Below, piece by piece: positions 48,582 to 62,800 of a stretch of DNA of 64,000 nt. The notes beneath the pieces are model-generated. The model made no database searches. It saw only the letters and a list, made by a program, of their open reading frames with translations, and was not told the DNA's origin. The translations under genes and the position numbers were made by a program. Origin of the DNA: Iphione sp. A-MEVVRFRX5 (Eukaryota); the NCBI GenBank assembly GCA_976226885.1, contig OZ320314.1, positions 76,508,001 to 76,572,000 of the forward strand. The letters are read 5' to 3'. Numbering within the stretch: the first letter of the stretch is position 1; every line of letters begins with the position of its first letter.

Positions 48582-51500
48582 GAATACTGCAGTGCAACCA
48601 GACTGTGAAGCGACCAAAACCCCTATTGCAGCAAATATGCCCCGAACCGACTTTTTTGCCTATGTTTACCATTAACAAATTAACTACAAGTGGCCAGACC
48701 ATAAAGCGGCCAAACCAGCCTGCAACCACACGTCTTAGGATGATATTCATACGAATCCAATGCCACAATGCGGCAAAAAGTGTTATGCTATCTTTCATGT
48801 ACACGTATTTTACTCAAATAGAAGCGGTGCCAGGAGTCCATGAAATACAAAGTCTCTATCTAGTGTAACCTACCCATCTGTGTATATTTTATGCACCATG
48901 GGCCTTGAAATACATATTGATTGCATGGGTACCAGTTTTCCTGCAGCCAGATCAATGTGCATGGTGCGTGATTAGTACATATCCTACCAAATAGTTTTCA
49001 ACCATCCCCCCTAGGGGCTGCTGTGTCTATTATCTTGGTCATGTACACATGGAAAGGCCTAGTCCTTATCGCGCGTGATCGTGCATAACTTTTAGATCCG
49101 AAACTGGAAATGTGCGTATTTTTCATGTACATGGAAAGACTGCCTTAGCACGACCACGATGTCCATTGCTCAAAGCATTGAAGTTTACAAATGCGGCCAC
49201 AGCTCCCATAACATCTCTGAACATACATGAAATGCAATTTCTTATAGTAAACCCTAACTGTTCAATACCTCCTATATGCATTTATTTCTATTAAGTCTTT
49301 CAGTATACATGTATTCATAAGGCATGTATTTATAACTTTATTTCCATTGAGTATGAGCTCAGGCCATAATGCGACCAAAACTGCTAATGTGACCATTTTG
49401 GCGAAGTAGGGACAAGTGGTTGCATTGTAGCATTCGACTGTACGTAATATCACCGACTACATTGCAAGTAAAGTGATCTATAGAAAATTAATTAAACAGT
49501 ATTTCTTCTGCAAAGGAAAGGTATGCATACAATATATTATACAATATATTCACATCCACGGGAGAAAAATCAAAGTTATGCATATGAGTACATGTATGAC
49601 TAAGTTTAACAGATACATGTGATATATTACAATTTCGTGCGCTTTCCTTATATTATATGAAAGAGATACCACTGTTGTAACTCAAACAAAGCTCGGTATA
49701 AAGTCCCTCTGCTATTTGTTTGCTCCTTTAAAAGGATTAACTTCGACGGTATTGTCCCAATTGTACAGCGGGCATCCCGAAGATGTTTTCCGAAGAATGC
49801 CCTATATAGGGGCATAAAGTCGCAATAGACAAGTCCTATAAAATACACCTCGAAGAAAACAGCCTACTGATACAAAATTATCTAGATTATACAGTTTGTA
49901 CAGGAGCATTGGTAGGATTTTTTTTCATACTGTAGGCGAAAAATGGAAAGAAACGTCCATATATAAACGTGTCTACAAACAGGTAAGAGTCCATCCCTTT
50001 ATCAATCGTCTACTTGCTCATGATTCCCATTATAGGATGACCTCTTTCTTTATATAACATGCGTTATCATGTTCAATGTAACTTTATCATTTATCATGTG
50101 ATGATATCCGGTGAGACCAAGTTGTTCAAACACTTGCTCTATAGACATCCTGTGTTTAAGTGCGTCCATAGAAGTCTGCCACTCGCCAAACATTCCCTTA
50201 TCCGGTGCTGCCACCTGATAGTAAAGAACTGATCCCAGAGCTTATTTGAGATTAATGACCAGATGAAGCATCATGTTCGGTTGGCTTTGACCTCTTTTCA
50301 GATATGGCCACAATACTCCTACAATATACAAATATGGTAAAGACTTCTTTGAGATCCATCGATGTCTTCGAAATAAATAAAACCTCAGACACATAGATAA
50401 TGTACTTGTACATGTATGTACATGTTTAAATGTATGATACTCTAGCGGGTGCGCTGTTGGATACATGCCTACACACTTCCATTTTTAAGGAATGATTTGA
50501 AATGAAACAATATTATCAAACCTTAGATTCAAAATAAAATTACTTTTACCTTTTATACGCCTGCTCGAACATAACGCGTCAAGGTCTTTACATCAAATTT
50601 CGAGTGGGTCACGAGACTTCACTGGCTTGCCCGTTTCAGCAGCTTTCTTGGAAATCATTCAAGAAGCCCTGCATTAAGCCGTTTCATTGGCATCATACAG
50701 AAACGGATTTAGACGTTACCCTCCATATTGAGGTACCATATACGGAGTTTGTTAACCACTCTTTTCATTATACATGAATATACACATGTTTACGTTAATT
50801 TGTGTCATAATAGCAGCATATTTTCAAAACAAATGATTCCAGTCACAGCTAGAATTGCATGGGCTAGCTCCTATAAGTAAGATAAGATCTGTGAAATCAT
50901 AGCGTTGTTGCAAAGCATAAGAGTGTGAGACTTAACATGGATGTTACAAAACTACATATGTAACCCCTTCTGGCAAAATGAGTCAGAAGTCAGAAAAAAT
51001 CATATTTGAGTTATATATTCCATGATAAAATGCTATTTCTTACCTTTCAAAGGAGGTATAGCATGTCTTCCTACCATAATTAGGCAAAATATAATGCACC
51101 GACAAAGTTATGTAGTGATGCGGTAAACCATAAAAAAGAAACCAAGATATTTGCATTTGCAGTTTTGGTACAACACTCTACCGCGGTCCCCTTAATAAAA
51201 ATAAAAATGAACTGTCTTGAAAAAAGTCTTTGTAAAACTTATTAGTAAACAACCACTTGTGGTTTTCGATTCTAGTCTAGTAACCAATCACACATTCAAA
51301 CATCGGCAGTAGAACAAGGTCATCTGGTCTTTTTTGGTTGACCACGACCTCCTTTAGCACGCTTATGTTGTGGCTTTGGTTGTGGCTTGGGTTCAAAGTC
51401 AGAGTCTTGGTCCGAGCTGGACCTCTCCATTTGCCTGAACATCTCCTCCTCCTCCTCTGAAGTGTTAGGGGTCCGGGCATGCCCACGGCCCCTACCACTG

Positions 51501-53625
51501 CCTCTGCCTCTGTCCCTGTCCCTGCCTCTGCCCCTGCCTCATGCAGGGTCTTCCTCACTAGGCCTGGAGCTGGGCCTGGAGCTGGTCCTGGCTCTGTATC
51601 CAACTCTGCTTCTGTCACCATGGGCTCAGGAACAGAGGGCTTCAGGCACATGATGTCTTTGGACTCCTTTGTGCAAAAGTCTCTGATGTTCTTAAACAGA
51701 TACAACTGTCTCTTGGTAGACAAACCAGGGGAGGGAACAGGTGCAGTAGGGTCCCTGGGGACTGCTAGGGGGTCAACATTTAACATCTTGAAAGTGTTTG
51801 GCTGGCTGTCTGCATACTCACGGAAAGAGATAACCCCAGGGTTTTGGTTTGAGAACTCAAAATGGTGAAGTTGCTTGATACCTTGCAAACGTCGATGAGA
51901 GGAGGTAAAAGGAAAGCTTGCCAGTCATAGGTTGGGACATGGACATTCCCAGACTCATCGCCAACAAGTTGGGGAACATTGACCTGATCCTGGGTACTCT
52001 TCAGTACTGTCTGAGATAACTCGGATAGGCTAGATACTGACTCATGTCGAAACTTTAGCAAACCAAAGCACCAGTCTGGGGCAAATTTCGTGTGGCCAGT
52101 AATAAGAAAGTTCAGAGTTATTGTTTGGTGCCGACCAGTCAGGACCCTCCACATGAGATATGCTAGCACCCAATTGTTCTTGTTCTGGCCACTGCAAATG
52201 TTACGGTGCAGATCCATAGAGCATGACCCCAGATCAAACATGTGAAAATAGTGGTGCAAATACGAGATTACAGCATTGGATCCCTTGCTCCCACAGTGTT
52301 CCTCATCTATAAGATAGTTGACCTGCTTGGGAATAGCCTCATTACACACCTCAAAGATACCCAACTTCCGTGGGACTAGAAAACAAAGTGGCCTGGGCTG
52401 CATGGGGGAAGGGGGGAGGTAGACCTGCTGGGCATAATCAAAACTGATGTGAGTAGCTATGTCTACAGAACAGGACGGGTGTGGACCAAGGGCTGGGGTA
52501 TTGGCTTTCCAATAGGCAGCCTTGGCATTCTTTCCCATATTCTGATAAAATGTCCTTTCCACTGTTACGACCTGTAAATGTTTCTACTGCTTCTTAAGTT
52601 TTGCTACCTTGACTACCTCAGGGAGATTACTAGATGAGGAAATGTCCCTGTAGTTAAGCTCATATTCCCAACATAGGTCAGTTTTCTGGCAGGAACAAAC
52701 TATATGGGGGAGAAGTTGCAACCACAAATTCCAGAATGTGGAGTCTGTACTCAGACTCCTCCATAGCTTGACAATACAGTTTGTAGATGTCTGCCTTAGT
52801 GGCAGACGAGGGGAAGAGGAGAATATCATTGCGCTTGTGGGTAGCTACATGGCCAGGTAGGACAAGGGCATTGGTCTCTGCATATGAGGTGATGAACCCT
52901 GCAACTCTTTGGATGTCGGTGAGGTGGAGGATTTTGGTTTTTGACTGTCTGCCACCAGCCCTCTTGATACGGGGGACAACTCTGTTGTCCTTATACCATT
53001 GAATAATGTTGGTGAGTTTGTGTTGGCTGATGCTGGAAGGTAAAGTGAAACACCCTAAATATTTAACCAAAAGAGTAAGCCATAAATACAAGTACATGAA
53101 GGTTGTAACGTCTAATTGGTGGGTGGTTACATACTCCATGACTCCTCTGACATACTTATCTATTAACTCATACTGTTAGCACTATAAATACATGAAAATT
53201 ACATTTCATCATTAAGGTACCTGTAAGGAAATAAGTAGAAAGATGAGGGATACTCATGCATACATAAACTTAAAGGTGTCCCTGCAAATGACCTTGGAAC
53301 TAATCATGTAGTGACTGTGTGGAGCACATCTCTCATGCTTCCCCCTTTCCCCCTTCTTCCACACTGATGTCATGACACTTATGTCTGTCACCATACTTAT
53401 TATGCCTTGGAGTAGCATGTCCTTTACCCCTAGAAGAGATAGGTATACATGACATCTCATCAAGATGGATAAGATTGACATAGTATTGTTTTTTTCTGGC
53501 AAGGGTGAAACTGATTAATTTAATAATACTTATGATTTTCCACATGTCAAATTGAAGTGATCTTTGCAGTTACAAATCTTCATGAAGAATTGCGAAATGG
53601 TCATCAGGTTTAGCAATGGAGTAGA

Positions 53626-56024
53626 GGTATGAGTCCCAGGTTTTGATGCGATTTGCCAAGGGCTGGGACGATAGTTCTAATATGGTTAAGAGTGACCCCG
53701 CTATGTTTTCAATGTCCCAGAGGCATCTTTAAACCTGCAACAAATCCCTAGGGAAAAAGCCATCCCAGAATATGAAACGAAGCCTTCCATTGGATGTTAT
53801 GAGCAAGGCGGAAGCGGAAATGGTATTATTTGATTTATTTGGCGGGGAAGTAACCATGGCGACTGCTGATGAGACGACAGCGAAGATGTCTCTGCTACGA
53901 GGAAAAGTGTGTATGCTCGAAGGCAAAAACGTCGTGATTGATGATGAATACACACTCCCGGGGAAGAAATACAAAATGTACGATGTGCGAGAGGTTGGAA
54001 ACGGGAAGAAAAGCAGTGTTCGGGGCGACCAGCTTAAATTCCGCGATGAAGCAACTTTTGACATTGGGTTGGAGAGGACGACGAAGATGATTTCACCCCC
54101 GAAAGTCTAGCTACGAATTGCTTTTACATGCCCGAGCAGGCGGAAATCGATAAGATGAAAGGCGAGGTTAGTCGCAAGAGTACGCTGGAGCAGACAAAAT
54201 GGGCAGTAAAAATTCTGCGAGGTGGTTATCAGTTTTGGGGGGGTGATTATATGACTGGATAATATGGGTCGATTTCTGTGTGAAAAGCTGGAAATAACTA
54301 ATCATATTCACTTTCTTTGTTACAGAATGGCTACTGACCGTGGACAAACTGTTGGATTTCGAGCAACTACCTGAAAAGCAGCTTGCGGAAATCCTGGAGG
54401 GTTTCTATACAGCGGTTCAGACAAAAAACAGGGAAATGTATTCCAAGAGTGCGCACAAGAATATACGCTGTGGTATTCAGAGGCACTTGCAGGCACCCCC
54501 ACATAGTCGCAATATAAACATAATGCAGGACATGGCTTTCCGTCAAGCCAACCTTGCCTATATGGGCTATATGGCAAAGATAAGAATGGCTGGAAAAGAC
54601 AAAAGCGCACACAAACCCCTCATCGAGCCGGAGGACATTAACCTACTTCATGAAAGAATTTTCACTGACACCCCAACAGGGCTACAGAGAAAAGTGTTTT
54701 TTGATATCCTACTGCACTTCAGAGGGCGGGGGAGGGAGGGTTTGCGCGAGCTGACCCGTGACTCATTTGTCATCTCCAAGGATGCAGCTGGCAGTGAATA
54801 TGTGAGCATGCGATACAATGAAGTGGAAAAAACACGTAGTGGGCTCAAGCATGACGAGGAAGATGTCTACAAAACCATGTATGCCCTACCTGAGGATGAA
54901 TCCCGATGCCCAGTGCATTCCCTGCGGAAGTATCTATCCCTGCTGAATCTGGCCTGCTCGGCGTTTTTCCAACGTCCGAAACGCAACTATGACAAGCGAG
55001 GAACACTTTGGTACGATAATATGGCTGTAGGGGTTAACACCCTGTACAGCATGATGGCGTCAATGTCCAAGGAGGGAGGCCTTTCTCGTATATACACGAA
55101 CCACTGCATTCGTCGGACAACTGTCACCACTCTCGACCAAGCTGGATACTCCGCAGATAAGATCCAGAGTGTAACTGGGCACAAGTCCGCTGATTCATTG
55201 AAAGCATATCGTGGATTGCCCAACAAGAGCGTCAAGAAGGGGATGTCGAACCTCCTAACGACTTATGGAAAGGAGAACCGTGATAATCCAGACAAACAGA
55301 AGAAACACGATGACAAAGACAGCGGCGTAGTAGTGGCACCGGCTGGTCCGGGTATCGCGGCCAGGGTTGACACCGAGGGAGCGGGTACATTGGAGAAAGA
55401 CACGATGCCGTTGGTTGTAAACACATCTGTAATGGTTAGGAAGGATGACATCTTGCACTCCTTGTTCTCTGGAAACACGTCGCTTAATCAGTGCACGTTT
55501 AACATCCATTATGGAAAATAAACAGTAAATTTTGTGTGGAGACGGACAACGACCAGGTTCCTTACACGTGTGGAGATACGCTAGACCGGAAGTGCGAGCT
55601 TGATGGTAGTTTTTGGATATTTCTGTTTTTTACGGTTACTATCACTAAAAAGCTGACTTTTATACCCAAATTAATACTGAAGGGTAATATTTCATGTTCG
55701 TTTAAGTTTGAAGAAGTTCGGATGTTATTTGCTTGCATCATATCATACTCGACCAATGAGAGAGAGTGACAGTATCGTTGTTGTCAATAAAAAAGCAAAA
55801 TGGTGACCGCCTTCGAGTATGTAAGACACTGCATTCTTTCTTTCTTCAATAAATAATTATATTGCATTTTTAACATATATTTGTAGTGGGGAACTAAATC
55901 AGAACCACGATTAAGGACTTTATGTCGGGAAAGGTCGAGAGTTTAAGCCGCTCGGGCCTCCATGCCGTCCATAATCGTGTAGTCCCAGCCCGAGGCAATA
56001 GCGTTGAAACCTGGGACTCATACC
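53626..56024. repeat. ~44-bp inverted repeat pair flanking YR gene 1 (53626-53669 and 55982-56024)
   Basis: GGTATGAGTCCCAGGTTT (18/18) and GGGCTGGGAC (10/10) are shared in inverted orientation. Confidence 0.85.
53886..55521 (+). CDS. Crypton-type (DUF3504 / KIAA1958-KCTD1-like) tyrosine recombinase, copy 1; one upstream frameshift
   Basis: Exon 1 runs 53886-54221, with an apparent 1-nt deletion near 54070 between ...ATFDIGL and EDDEDDF...FYMPEQ. A phase-1 GT-AG intron lies at 54222-54325, then exon 2 at 54326-55521. Motifs: FYTAVQTKNREMYSK, TPTGLQRKVFF, GRGREG, EVEK, NHCIRRT, TGHKS...SLKAY. An in-frame ATG at 54128 would give a 429-aa product. Confidence 0.8.
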
Positions 56025-56063
56025 GACACTAAGTCATTAAATTCGGTTCTAAAATTATTCCCC
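55888..56063. repeat. ~176-bp imperfect palindrome between the two convergent YR genes
   Basis: Outer arms 55888-55928 and 56023-56063 (29/41 identical as inverted repeats). Inner CTCGGGC (55951-57) / GCCCGAG (55988-94) pair is nearly concentric. Confidence 0.75.
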
Positions 56064-56399
56064 ATCCCTTAAATTAAAATATAATAAGGATAGTTCAGTT
56101 GAAAAACAAAGACGCAGAAATGCATGTGCCATATGATGCCATCTTGGTTTTTATTGAATACACTGAATAAGTCGAAGCATGTCATTGGTTGGTTGTTTTT
56201 GGCCTGCAAAGTCGTCATCTTGGCAGGAAAATCAACATAAATAAGATAACATGCACTGAATGCAATACTTTTTGAGGCAAAATAGTTCAAAAATCTGGAA
56301 ATCCAAAAAAAGTTATTGGCCACTTCCGCCGTGAAACTACATGAAAACACTCACTTTGAGCAAGGAGCCCAAGCCGAACGGAGGTACATGAAATGCATG

Positions 56400-58064
56400 T
56401 TACTTGTTGAAAGTGATGTTAAAAGTGCAGTTATTCAAAGTGGTGTGGCCACTAAATAGCGACTGGAATAAATCTTCATCCTGGACATTCACTGCCGTAT
56501 TTGTGGTGACCGTTTGGGTTAATTGCAAGTTTTCCTCATCAGAACTCGTTTCGCGGGGGTCCGGCTTCACTGTAGTTATGGCTACTATTTTATTTTTACC
56601 TACTTTGACCAAATCAGCTGATCCAGTTGCGGTGTCTTCGTCCTTGCCATAATTCGTCAGGGCATTCGACATGGACAGCTTCACTTTCTTCGATGGGCCC
56701 CCTAAATAGTGCTTTAGGGACTCCGCGCTCTTGTGGCCCGTTACTGATTGAATTTTTTTGGCACTGTACCCAGCCTTGTCCAAAGTGGTCATGCAGGTGC
56801 GGTGAATTGAATGATTCATATGCACACGGCTGAGCCCTCCTTCCTTGCTCATTGCGGACATCATTCCATATAAACTGTTTACTCTGAGAGGTGCATTGTC
56901 ACACCAAGTGGTCAAGGCTGCATCCACCTTACATTTAGGCCGTTGGAAGAAGGCCTCGCACTGCTCGCTCAACAAAGACAGGTATTTCTTAAACGAAGTT
57001 ACCGGGCAGCGACTAAGATCTGAAGGTAGGCCATACATAGTTTTTTTGGTGTCCTCCTCATCCTTGTTTAACCCACTGCGCATTTTCTCGGCCTCATTGA
57101 ATGACATTGTGACATATTCATGGCTGGCAGCATCATGGACCAACACAAATGAGTCCTTCTTCAGGTAGCGCAATCCTTCCCTTCCACGACGCCCAAAATG
57201 AAATAGGATATCGTAAAAAACCTTTCTCTGCAGTCCAGTAGGGGTATCCCTGGACACTTTTTCGTATAGCAGAGCAATGTCCTCAGTTTTGATCACAGGT
57301 TTGTGGGCACTCACATCTCAACCAGAGGTACGTATTTTCGCCATGTATCCGCTGTACGCTAAATTTGCCTGGCGAAAATCACTGTCATGAAGCAGGTTGA
57401 TGTTACGGGAGTGGGGAGGTAAAGTCAGGTGTTGTTGCAAGCCACATCTAATGTTCTTAAATGCACTCTTGGAGTACATTTGAAACGATTTAGTGCATAC
57501 ACTGGTGTAAAACTTCTCCAGACATTCTGCCAGTTCAACCGATGTCAAATACTCAAAGGCCAGATCGTGTCCGACCGAACCAAGCCAATCTGAAAAATAT
57601 AATGAAAGGGCCATCAATTAACATATGTTTAGTACAGTTTTAAAGTGATTCATTTCTTTCTTTAGCCCATTCGAAGGCACATTCTGTCATCAACACACAC
57701 CTCGAAATTTTTTTACCGCCCAGCGGATTTGGTCGACTGTGCCTTTGTGGTTAACTTCTTTTTTCATTGTGTCCACCTCGCTCTGATCTGGCATGTAAAA
57801 ACTTCCCTTATGTCCATCTAGATTGTTGTTTTCAGTCTCCTCCAAAATATTCGCATCTATTTCACCCATCACATCTAGTCCCAGATTGAAGGTGGCAGCT
57901 GCCTCTCCCACCAGTTCATCGGGACATGTAGTGTGCTTCTCCTTCGTTAGCAGATCTTCCACCTACAGGACGGGGTTATCCAACCCTCTATGAAAGAATT
58001 CATTAATCACTCTGACGTTTCGACCATTTAGGCCACAAAATTTGCCACATCGAGGAACATCCAT
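56400..58064 (-). pseudogene. Crypton-type (DUF3504-like) tyrosine recombinase, copy 2 (pseudogene)
   Basis: ATG at 58064, exon 1 to 57701, phase-1 intron 57700-57590 at the same position as in copy 1, exon 2 57589-56400. In-frame stops at 57965-63 (TAG) and 57320-18 (TGA). HxxR is changed to HSIH. Roughly 60% identical to copy 1 by eye. Confidence 0.85.
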
Positions 58065-58404
58065 CTTGCTTTCTCAAAATAATGTTGCTAGGGCCCGCCT
58101 TGCCGCCAAACAGTTGAAACAAGTGTTTCCGGTTTAGTTTTCTCCAATGGCAGCCGTTGAAACATTTTTTCTGCGGGTGATGAGTACCTCGTTTCAATTC
58201 ATTCGTTTAATCCAAAAAATAATACAACTGTCACTTCAAATCATTTTAGAACATAAAATTATAGTCTCAACAAGTTAGACAAGTTTGGGAAACAATAAGT
58301 ACCTGAAGACAGCTGGAAAACTTCCTGCCATCTGTCTGCCAACTTGGTTGCCGTGAACTGTTTGCTGCAGTTGTCATCATTGTAGTGTTTACAAGAGCAC
58401 CTGC

Positions 58405-58580
58405 AGGAAATGTTCATGTGGTTAGTTTTCCAGTTTACAAAATTTTATAATGGCCCTAAATACACCAGTCAAAACCCATTAATTTTGCACAAACTCCTAG
58501 AGGAAATGTTTACATGGTTAGTTTCTCATAGTTTAAAAAATTTTTAAATGGCCCTAAATACAAATGCAATGATAAAAACC
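58405..58580. repeat. ~96-bp diverged tandem duplication in intron 1 of the transposase gene
   Basis: aggaaatgtt...tggttagttt...atggccctaaatac occurs twice (~58405 and ~58501). Confidence 0.75.
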
Positions 58581-59726
58581 TATTCTAACATGTTCACAAG
58601 ATACTTCAGAATCTGCAAGGGGATTTGCATCTATAGAGACAATTTTCTAATAAGTTTGTTCTTCGATTGTTGGGAGCAACTGCATGTCAGATTAAAAGAA
58701 CTCACCTGAAGTTTTCACAGTGTGCCCACTCATCTTTCAGGATCTACTCAGTAGGATCTGTGACTACAAGTAAATCATTGACATCTCCTAAGGGTTCCTT
58801 CTCTTCCTCCAATTGTTCTTCTACCTCCTCAACACCCTTCTCATCCACCAGGCCCTCCTCCACCTCCTCCTCATAGAGAAAGTACTCATCTACAAAATGC
58901 CACCATTGTGCCTCTCCAGCCACGCCATGTAAATTGGCCCGACTGATGTTTAAAGCGTCTGCCAAGGCTTGAGCCCGATCCGTGGCCATGCCTGGTTGTT
59001 TGCAGACACTTCTGCATTAAAATACTATGTTATTCCCATCTCTATTGATTATTATTCAACGCTAGAGCAGAGACCCATGTCCGCTCACCATCAAGCCAGA
59101 CATTTAAACTGACCCAAACACACACACGTGGGAGGCTCTCGACCAATCGGTGCACTGCATTCACTACACATGACCCCTATAGCAACGATTGTTTAGATGA
59201 CGTCTCCCTTTAAATGGCTGGTCATTGGTCAGAAAGAATGTACTTTCAAAATCTAAAAACATCATTGACTAGGTAAATTCACACGCTTTCAGCAGGTACC
59301 TGGGAAGTAGGGCCTAGGATGATGGGAGGACCAGAAAGCAAGCTGCTAAAGTTTGGAAAAATAGCCCTGAGCGAGGGTTCTTTGGTCTTTGTGCATTCAA
59401 GCATCTACTACCTTCAGAGCTATATTGCAGGCACTTATAGTCCACGTGGGATTCTAATATTTTCACAGAATAAACTTCAGACATGATAGATATGAAAACA
59501 ATCAAAACCCCATTTTCAATATTTTGACCGACATCCACCTTTGGAGGCCCATATCTCAGTTTTAGTCCCTGCAACTTCTGACTCATTTGACTAGAATGGG
59601 TCAGATATTTTTTTTTAGATGATTATCCTATCTTAAATATATTTAAACAGGCTGAAGTGTGTATTCAATTGGTAATATTACCCGCACATTAAAAATGTGC
59701 TTTCTAGCAAACTTAGGGCTACCCCA

Positions 59727-59880
59727 TTTATTCCAGCCTTGTGGTGGGATACAGTGAGGTTACATACCTCTAGTGGGGGGTATGGTAAACAAGTGTGCAC
59801 CAACACTGTTGTTATGCAAAAGAAAATAGGTCCACACACAAAGAATATGTCATTTATTTAAATGTCAAGGCTGGAATAAA
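59727..59880. repeat. 154-bp segment bounded by a perfect 15-bp inverted repeat (possible MITE)
   Basis: TTTATTCCAGCCTTG at 59727-59741 and CAAGGCTGGAATAAA at 59866-59880. No TSD recognised. Confidence 0.55.
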
Positions 59881-62800
59881 GACAAAACATGTATGGTGAG
59901 CTGTGGATGAAGCAAAGTACTCATTTAGGCAGCATTATCATACCAAACTCAGCCTTCTGGCCTTGTTTCATATTCATGCTACCTGAATTCATATTTTGCT
60001 TCATCCAAGCACCCCATACCTGTTTTGTCCATATATTTTATGGGAAGAAATGTGCTAATATAAAAAAAATTAATAAATACACTCTGAACTTTTTAACCCT
60101 TAAAACTTTCATTTAACGGCTGCTGGTCTTCACCACCAACCTTTTTGTAGCCTACTTTATGTAAACGTTGATATATATTAGTCAACTTCAAATGGTATCA
60201 TAATTTTTTTGCAGACGTTGAAGGGTCGCTTTAGAACCATGTTGTAATGGTAAAATGTTATATCCATAAGAACACGTGTGTACAAATCTTATCTCTACCA
60301 TCAAACACAAAAAAGATTCACTGCGTTATGCAATGTTAAAAGCAATTTCTAAATTGTCTCTCTGGATTATTTTGGAAAGGCAGGTGAAGGATATTAATCA
60401 AAAATGACTGAAAACACTGGACGTGCAGACGGCGCCAGGGACATTCTCCACATGCAGACAAGTACTCCTTTGTACCATGATGAGGGCGACTAAGATCACA
60501 TGCGCGCGATGCGTGCGCGCCGATAACACGCACGAATTGTTTACATCTCCCTGCACCTGCTGAATCCCCACGACTGATAGAGACCGCTCAATGAACGGAA
60601 ACGTTGATAACTAAAGAGGCTCACGCCGATAAAAACGTACCCTTACATGCTTTGCATTATCAGCTTCGGAAGTTGTAGAGCTGCTAACGACCACGCCGTT
60701 CGTCCTTGCAACATGTTCTGTTCTCTGAGGAGCTTGCCCATGTAGGCTGCATCCGTACTGCCTCATAGCTCGTGAACGTATGCTTAACGGGGAGTCCTTA
60801 CCTTTTTGTTTTTGCAAAATGTGATATTTTTTTCTGGTTTCATTCGGCCCATCCAGTCTCGTCCTTATTAGTCTTCCCTTGAATATGACGTGTGCCTTGC
60901 AACCTTCCCCTGAGGCCTAATTTTCACGGACCTATGTAGCGTGTAGAATTTTCAGTAAACGTGGAGCACTGTGAAAGGTAAAGCTCTGTCACCATACTCA
61001 AGTGTATGCATGTAGTTTGACCATCATGTACACCTTACAATTCCCATACAGAACACGCTGCCATTGACACAGATTTGTGGCAGAATGGGATATGCTCCAT
61101 TCTGAAAATATATGACACACATCCTACACACTACACGTGTGCATGGAGACACAGTGGAGACACTCCTGCTGTTATCCTATGGATCCCTAAACAGTGACAA
61201 CACAGAAAAATGGCACATGGAGACATGGGATCATGGAAATTAGTCCTAATGGTCTCACTAGTGCGAATCTCAAGGTTTTCTTTCCTTTTGTTTTACCATC
61301 TACGTTCACTATGCCCCTTCGCTTCATAACCTTGTTATCCTTCGATAACAATATTTTCAAATCTCTGTGTATTTTTAGGCGGGGAGAGCCAGCTGTTTCC
61401 CTGCTTGTACTATTACCTTGGACCATTTTCCCAATCAACCTTCACAATGTCTAGATAACCTTCCAAAGGCCTCCAAGTTGTTTTAGTTTCTCATCCAGCA
61501 CTCTATGATAAGTAGCAGAATCGTAATTTTAAAATATCTGCTCAGTGTGTTTTTGGGTGTAACTTGCCGCCCAACATTCCTATTATTCTTTGAGAAAAAC
61601 GCCCAAACACAAGCTTACGAGTGACAGAAACCGCCACAGTTAAACATACCTCTTACATCATTTCTTGTTGTACATGTATATGATGGTGTGACCCTATGTC
61701 CCGGGCCCTATGTAGACAGAATGGCAGGCCTACTGCCCTCTGACTTTGTGAACTGCTTATATAGAGATAATATCTATATCAGCGACTAGTATCAATCAAC
61801 ATGCTTTGCATCCCCTGATACAAAAGTCTCTTTTGTGAGTGCTACTGAAGATAAGTTATGGGAATTTCTCGATGCGTGAGGACACTACAGATGGAAAGGT
61901 CACGAGTTTCCCATAATGACAAGGGAAGGATCACAAAAGAAAACACACACACCATCATGTACAAATCCTTTACATAAGTTACAGGATCCTGTCTCACCAT
62001 TGTCTCCCCTGAATTCTTTATACCTGCTAGACTTGAGACACTTTGAACATATACAGTTATGTACCAGTAATACCCACTGCCATGTTGGATATATGGCAGT
62101 ATAGTAGTCTGCAGCGCATAAGAAATACAGTATTCACACAGTTTATTACATCTTGTAATATGTTATCTCCAACAAGACGTCAGATATATGAATTATTATG
62201 ACAGAGGCACAGACACGCAACAATCTCTATATAGGTAGTTTTATTCATTCATCATCGGTATTCTATGCTGTTATGCCTATTTAGTTATCAATACATGTAT
62301 ACACTTAATGGGGAGAGTGAAAAGATGGTATGTGTTGTAACAACAAAGTGCACACCATACCAGTAGGTTTGATTGCAGCCTTTATTCTTCTTCATAGCAT
62401 ACAGCATGGCAGAGTTCAGCAAATCCAGCAAGTCCAACAAGAGTGCCAGAGCTACTCTCTATATATACCCAAACCTTTTGACAAACACTATGTACAAACA
62501 TTGTGTAAACAGGAAATAGTCATTAATTACTGTCATTCAAACTATACACTTTACATTACACCAACACTTTGAGAACATTATTAGTAACAACACATTCTCT
62601 ATCACAACAATTACAGTGTGCATTTTATTTAATGACACACGTCTATAAAAACAAAACATATATATCTTGTTAAATATTTCTAGGGCTATCATGTCATGTC
62701 CGTACAATGATGGATATCGTTTTTGATAATACCTATTGACAACAGCATTTTTGTTGAAATTAAGAAAGCCTTTCATACTTTCTTTAATGCGTTTGCTGTC

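Follow-up and report, generated by a model that had tools for sequence, protein, structure and literature searches.

The stretch of DNA analysed here, called the window below, is a 64,000-nucleotide (nt) piece of contig OZ320314.1 of Iphione sp. A-MEVVRFRX5 (G000:C2:76508001-76572000 of the 1.18-Gb assembly), and coordinates are positions in it unless another locus is named. It contains a unit of 8,645 bp (50960-59604), bounded by imperfect terminal inverted repeats (TIRs) and an ATAT target-site duplication (TSD), in which a gene for a putative DDE-type transposase with a DUF7869 domain holds two tyrosine recombinase (YR) genes inside one intron. The unit is very probably the product of serial, in situ nesting, three deep, of three independent mobile elements: a cut-and-paste DNA transposon (the host), a Crypton-like element, YR2, in the second intron of the host's transposase gene, and a Crypton-like element of another family, YR1, inside YR2. 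An earlier note on this DNA had offered two explanations, Cryptons inserted one into another within an intron that tolerates them and, as the promoted alternative, a stable composite in which the DDE transposon carries a dual-YR module as cargo; the comparisons described here bear out the first.

The outer borders lie where the earlier note had placed them. The host TIR occupies 50960-50990 at the 3' end of the element in transposase orientation and 59574-59604 at the 5' end, as part of an inverted repeat pair (50948-50990 and 59574-59616) that is 79% complementary, and comparison of the flanks with those of family copies places the two ATAT duplications at 50956-50959 and 59605-59608. Both termini are mutated in the window, to GTAACCCC at the 3' end and to CTGACCC at the 5' end; other copies of the family end in GTGACCCGTTCC... 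(also written GTGACCCGTTCCAGCGAAATGAGTCGGAAGTC...) and ...GGGTCAC. A genome search with the whole unit returned at least 29 other host copies of 4.4-4.5 kb, which are 82-89% identical to it apart from a single alignment at 79%. Identical 4-bp duplications flank 20 of the 23 copies in which both ends are present, most commonly ATAT, also AAAT and ATTT; the 4-bp duplication of the host is summarised as AWAT. The host is a multi-copy cut-and-paste DNA transposon with true TIRs and TSDs.

The host sequence in the window is split into two parts, both on the minus strand. The 5' part (58253-59604), delimited by genome search matches and copy comparison, holds the TIR, exon 1, exon 2 and the start of intron 2. 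The 3' part (50960-53601) holds the end of intron 2, exon 3, intron 3 and a degenerate last exon; it matches at least 29 copies at 87-89% identity (one at 84%) and was also recognised by tblastn to the proteins P0012, a fish homologue, and P0011. Other host copies are longer by about 334 bp at window positions ~51188-51194 (between query positions 229 and 235), which reflects either a deletion in the window copy or its subfamily or an insertion in the other copies. One further host copy, L014 (G000:C19:53294400-53299866), is rearranged or truncated and has a YR2-family Crypton about 9 kb away (C19:53308884-53311162), the two being neighbours and not nested. Just to the right of the element, the short nested inverted repeats at 59727-60034 may represent a small insertion resembling a miniature inverted-repeat transposable element.

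The transposase gene is predicted to have four exons, and in many other copies the last exon still encodes 590-607 aa, with shorter exons upstream of it. The homology-supported part of exon 2 (58303-58402, reading RCSCKHYNDDNC...FQLSS and then G) ends at the minus-strand donor tcttcag/gtactt, with 58303 as the last exon base, and exon 3 (53257-53429, minus strand, GVKDMLLQG...FKFMY), located by tblastn, begins immediately after the acceptor tctcttctag/gggtaaaggacatg (gg gta aag gac atg), with 53429 as the first exon base. Comparing the exons with homologues singly, and not as one joined spliced protein, aligns exon 2 without gaps to residues 105-137 of P0012 (score 45, shuffle mean 28.5, standard deviation 4.4) and more strongly to P0019 (score 62), and exon 3 begins at residue 138 of P0012. 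The predicted splice sites lie at the positions given in the earlier note, both being in phase 1 and giving a join collinear with P0012, and the collinearity at residues 137/138, together with the GT-AG boundaries, indicates that intron 2 is probably real and spliced. It extends over 53430-58302 and measures 4,873 bp here, compared with about 220 bp in insert-free copies.

The window copy of this gene is a pseudogene, with two stops, at least two frameshifts and the loss of a candidate catalytic aspartate. Exon 1 has a stop at 58744-58746, and the last exon (51277-53049, minus strand), which has a length of about 600 aa where it is intact, carries frameshifts near 52750 and near 51900 and a stop between KKQ and KHL, with the C-terminal tail in a shifted frame. 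The motif HCDNC has become HRNIC, which replaces the candidate catalytic D289 by N. It had been argued that splicing would remove the YR genes without harming the transposase, a point that is moot for a pseudogene. The low-complexity tail of the protein (51483-51542; GPAP repeats, RG repeats and an acidic run) varies in repeat number among copies, including L020, L021 and L026, and is frameshifted in the window copy.

Both recombinase genes lie within intron 2 and are of the DUF3504 type, as had been noticed before. The YR1 open reading frame (ORF; 54340-55521, plus strand, 393 aa) is open, and the YR2 gene (56400-57962, minus strand) survives as three ORF pieces. The two YR ORFs score 44.7 and 37.7 bits against DUF3504 (Pfam cut-off 29.7) and 25.2 and 27.0 bits against Phage_integrase, which is about at the cut-off (27.1). 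The R-H-R-Y residues of tyrosine recombinases, of which the first catalytic R was assigned by eye only, are represented by HCIRRT, GHKS and a Y box (LKAY) in YR1 and by HSIRRT in intact copies of the YR2 family. The elements belong to different families, with about 59% protein and 64% DNA identity between them.

YR2 (53602-58252, minus strand) inserted 50 nt from the donor of intron 2. It has about 2.34 kb of sequence of its own, in two pieces (53602-53673 and 55983-58252), and shares one C/G with its target. The copy in the window is dead: its recombinase gene has an in-frame stop at 57318-57320, and the catalytic HSIRRT has changed to HSIHRT, so that the HxxR motif reads HSIH (R to H). It has at least 25 solo relatives with 75-84% identity that reach from one of these ends to the other, several of them with open 393-aa reading frames, and the intact ones carry HSIRRT. 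An end at 53600, which would have placed GTC within the element, was revised to 53602, as the AC that follows ...CGACG in solo copies fits the W-C of the target consensus given below.

YR1 (53674-55982, plus strand) is a Crypton of 2,309 bp that begins with GTTCTAATATGG... and ends with ...CGTGTAG. Its limits are set by four solo copies at unrelated loci, which are 91-94% identical to it and have identical ends, GTTCTAATATGG... and ...CGTAATCGTGTAG; dozens of more distant relatives have 83-90% identity, and the Crypton copies in the genome amount to about 330 5' ends. The solo copies measure 2,374 bp, compared with which YR1 of the window has lost about 65 nt, namely the tip and the right arm of its own 3' palindrome, the left arm of which remains at 55928-55960. 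At least one of the distant relatives is a non-autonomous derivative, of about 300 bp (L055:231-525, G000:C1:112473780-112474074), which consists only of the 5' ~100 nt and the 3' palindrome with the tail.

Whether these parts form one element or three is decided by sister copies of each. In the genome search at least 29 host copies join query position 2642 directly to 7298, with 5 bp between them. The site is uninterrupted in all 25 host copies that were aligned, and also in all of the ten nearer relatives (10/10), which have 91-95% identity along the probe and read AAATGGTCACAAAATTATAG or close variants. The empty site for YR2 in the host is AAATGGT-C-ACAAAATT and the occupied one AAATGGT[C ATCAGG…TTTTAGAA C]ATAAAATT. 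The second insertion can be reconstructed in the same way. When YR1 (53674-55982) is removed in silico, seven solo copies of the YR2 family align straight across the breakpoint, where six of the seven read GGGACGATAGTCCCAG or a close variant, with the palindrome tip GGGAC GATA GTCCCAG; the seventh is without the tip. Since the intact tip of the solo copies corresponds to GGGACGATA[G...YR1...G]TCCCAG in the window, YR1 sits in the loop of the palindrome of YR2, and its splitting of that palindrome explains the inverted repeat formed by 53626-53669 and 55982-56024.

These comparisons leave very little probability to a stable composite in which the DDE host would mobilise an intronic dual-YR module through its outer TIRs. 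Such an element would account for the TIRs and the ATAT duplication that bound the whole 8.6-kb unit, would profit from a module that lies in an intron and could be spliced out, and has a precedent in MarCry-1_FO, which is discussed below. However, the YR module is absent from the intron site in 35 of the 35 other host copies inspected, and none of the four junctions (host/YR2, YR2/YR1, YR1/YR2 and YR2/host) was found in a second copy: 100-nt probes match at full length only themselves, and their other matches end at the junction, the host junction probes having been scored for the best 40 of 650-679 first-look candidates. Moreover, conserved ends and solo copies of its own are found for either YR unit, YR1 lies inside YR2 and not beside it, and both the transposase and YR2 of the window copy are dead. 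The earlier note had named in advance the outcome that would mean simple nesting, host copies that lack the YR pair and YR units at unrelated loci, and this is what other copies of the family and the solo YR1 and YR2 elements show. The claim of a composite, and with it that of a dual-YR cargo, does not hold.

In the nested reading, a cut-and-paste transposon of about 4.4 kb with a four-exon DUF7869 transposase gene would first have inserted and duplicated ATAT. YR2, a CryptonA-like element of 2.3 kb, would then have integrated into the ~220-bp intron 2 at AAATGGT-C-ACAAAATT, and YR1, from another Crypton family, would have followed by integrating into the 4-nt loop of the 90-nt palindrome of YR2. 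The order of the insertions is read from which element interrupts which, and the events probably took place at this locus and not on a travelling composite.

Both Crypton insertions are precise to the base: the target kept all its bases, and the two ends of the element share with it one G (C in the complementary strand). A recombinase crossover would be expected to leave this pattern, a staggered cut of the DDE type would not. Duplications of 2 bp (AG) or 3 bp (CAT) at the Crypton ends were considered and ruled out, because the base before GTTCT varies over 48 copies and because the nearer empty sites do not fit them. The same precision speaks against an assembly artefact that joined unrelated repeats. 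Repeats are prone to mis-assembly; yet every junction is base-precise and the flanks rebuild known empty sites with only one shared G, which a chimera would not do three times, so that an artefact is scarcely credible.

Some points nevertheless weigh against serial nesting at this locus. A diverged second copy of the composite might in principle lie outside the best 40 of the 650-679 candidates scored. The TSD flanks the whole unit, as it also would if the nest had formed elsewhere and had moved here in one step. The junctions are those of the assembly, and the intron is a putative one, predicted from homology and GT-AG boundaries.

The palindrome that YR1 entered is a conserved feature of these elements. 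Both Crypton families have an imperfect subterminal palindrome of 90 nt, about 24 nt from the 3' end, which was located in the window (53626-53673 together with 55983-56024) and at L036:3608-3697, L037:1455-1544, L004:1444-1533 and L061:2255-2344. The outer arm of the YR2 palindrome in the window (53626-53669) pairs with the inner arm at 55983-56024. Folded singly as DNA, the palindromes reach -32 to -51 kcal/mol, with z-scores of -9 to -19, and the same two internal mismatches of 2 nt are found in three of the four folded copies, in both families, L061 being fully paired. RNAalifold detects compensatory changes in 7 of 15 inner pairs; this count comes from a mixed-family alignment and refers to the inner 15 pairs only, as that alignment does not bring the outer arms of the one family into register with those of the other, and the full stems are given by the single-sequence folds. 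Upstream of the palindrome there is an inverted (reverse-complement) copy of the circle junction, that is, of the 3' tail followed by the 5' end, which is without the three bases TAG. It lies at element positions ~2224-2280 of ~2375 in L004, L002 and L005, and at ~55892-55918 in the window. In a circularised element the palindrome would therefore be longer and would have a bulge of 3 nt where the ends join.

The arrangement of two convergent, paralogous recombinase genes with palindromic DNA between them (55888-56063) might also suggest a functional heteromeric pair, similar to XerC/XerD, that acts on this palindrome. The intervening DNA is, however, composed of a truncated half of the 3' palindrome of YR1 abutting one arm of the split palindrome of YR2. 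Each recombinase family transposes alone elsewhere, and YR2 has a stop and the exchange of its catalytic R for H, all of which makes a heteromeric pair extremely improbable.

The place where YR1 landed is consistent with the target preference of its relatives, for which 48 independent 5' flanks (L002-L005 and L053-L095) and 27 3' flanks (including L096-L115) of YR1-type elements were collected, the two sets coming mostly from different copies. Position -7 is a purine in all 48 of the 5' flanks, which have the consensus C-T-K-R-R-W-Y from -11 to -5, and the 3' flanks (n=27) have W-C-C-M-A from +1 to +5, so that the combined target reads CTKRRWY N4, element, WCCMA. The motif TGGG, which was chosen after seeing the data, starts exactly at -10 in 6 of the 48 flanks, against a background of 0.4% per position (binomial p = 3.6e-8; 2e-6 when corrected for 57 positions). 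The preference of YR1-type Cryptons for a palindrome, TGGGAC N4-5 GTCCCA, as target is well supported; this sequence matches the tip of their own palindrome, and YR1 probably entered the loop because the tip of the YR2 palindrome supplied such a target.

By extension, the palindrome may be a binding site of the recombinase. A tentative model, which is possible rather than probable, is that the enzyme binds to a palindromic core, made up of CTGGGAC and GTCCCAG with 3-5 nt between them, both in its preferred targets and in the palindrome tip of its own element, and that Cryptons would thus tend to enter each other's palindromes. The palindrome with its one-sided mismatches and the adjoining inverted copy of the circle junction would then form the recombination site that has long been missing for animal Cryptons, and the recombinase might read it in folded DNA.

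The locus is of interest for several reasons. It provides base-precise empty sites for two Crypton integrations; few such sites are available for animal Cryptons, in which neither ends nor targets are well defined. The target-site consensus obtained for one Crypton lineage has its mirror image in the palindrome tip of the same elements. It also keeps a false novelty out of the catalogue, as a new class of composites of DDE transposases and tyrosine recombinases does not hold. Furthermore, a multi-copy DUF7869 family with defined TIRs, TSDs and exon structure gives a transposase context to a Pfam "domain of unknown function".

The only Pfam match of the host protein is DUF7869. Hundreds of homologues, all without a name, occur in molluscs, annelids, echinoderms, priapulids, sponges and fishes, and a literature search on DUF7869 found no paper. 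In 25 aligned homologues D210, D289 and D331 are kept in at least 90%. An AlphaFold model of the transposase has a mean pLDDT (predicted local distance difference test score) of 77, with values above 90 across most of the core, and predicts an RNase H-like core in which these candidate DDD residues lie on β1, directly behind β4 and at the beginning of the helix that follows β5, respectively. The Foldseek matches of the model are weak (best E = 2.5e-4, template modelling scores of about 0.2-0.4) and serve as support for the fold class only; almost every one of the top matches is a DDE transposase or an integrase of a retrovirus, such as TnsB, Mos1, IstA and the integrase of Rous sarcoma virus.

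The Sola superfamily, which Bao et al. are said to have described in 2009, reportedly combines a 4-bp TSD, a candidate DDD triad and a length of 4-5 kb, and is reportedly found in marine invertebrates and fishes. The host resembles it in its 4-bp TSD (20 of 23 copies), its size of 4-5 kb and its spread in marine invertebrates and fishes, and possibly in its candidate DDD triad. The host transposon may belong to Sola, although Pfam assigns DUF7869 only.

YR1 and YR2 are, by their sequence features, CryptonA-like elements. They resemble CryptonA in being units of about 2.3 kb with a single YR gene of the DUF3504/Phage_integrase type and a short non-autonomous derivative (L055). No reverse transcriptase was found in the 2.3-kb units, which contain YR ORFs only, so they are not DIRS or Ngaro elements, and there are no TIRs, long terminal repeats or DDE-type TSDs at their ends, which read GTTCTAA... 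and ...GTGTAG (YR1) or ...CGACG (YR2). Terminal direct repeats of 4-6 bp, as in fungal Cryptons, were not found in YR1 or YR2, and the repeat at their ends is a single nucleotide, G. Terminal repeats are likewise reported to be absent from animal Cryptons (Kojima and Jurka 2011, PMC3212892). The YR1 and YR2 families differ from the described animal CryptonA elements in the conserved 90-nt subterminal palindrome and the internal inverted copy of the circle junction.

A composite of a Mariner-type DDE transposon and a Crypton YR, MarCry-1_FO of Fusarium oxysporum, has already been published (Kojima and Jurka 2011, PMC3212892), so that the earlier description of such an architecture as undescribed does not apply. 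Several copies of MarCry-1_FO with more than 97% identity, common TIRs, TA duplications and a fused architecture indicate that it moves as a unit (PMC3212892). In the window as in MarCry-1_FO, a single pair of TIRs, flanked by a TSD, encloses genes for both a DDE transposase and a Crypton YR. In contrast to MarCry-1_FO, the architecture in the window is confined to a single locus, and its parts have independent ends and copies.

Nesting of transposons is commonplace. As in other nested transposons, younger elements lie here within older ones, the empty sites can be recovered from sister copies, and the order of insertion can be read from the interruptions. There is no essential difference from such systems; what is special at this locus is that the first insertion lies in the intron of a transposase gene and the second in the loop of a Crypton palindrome.

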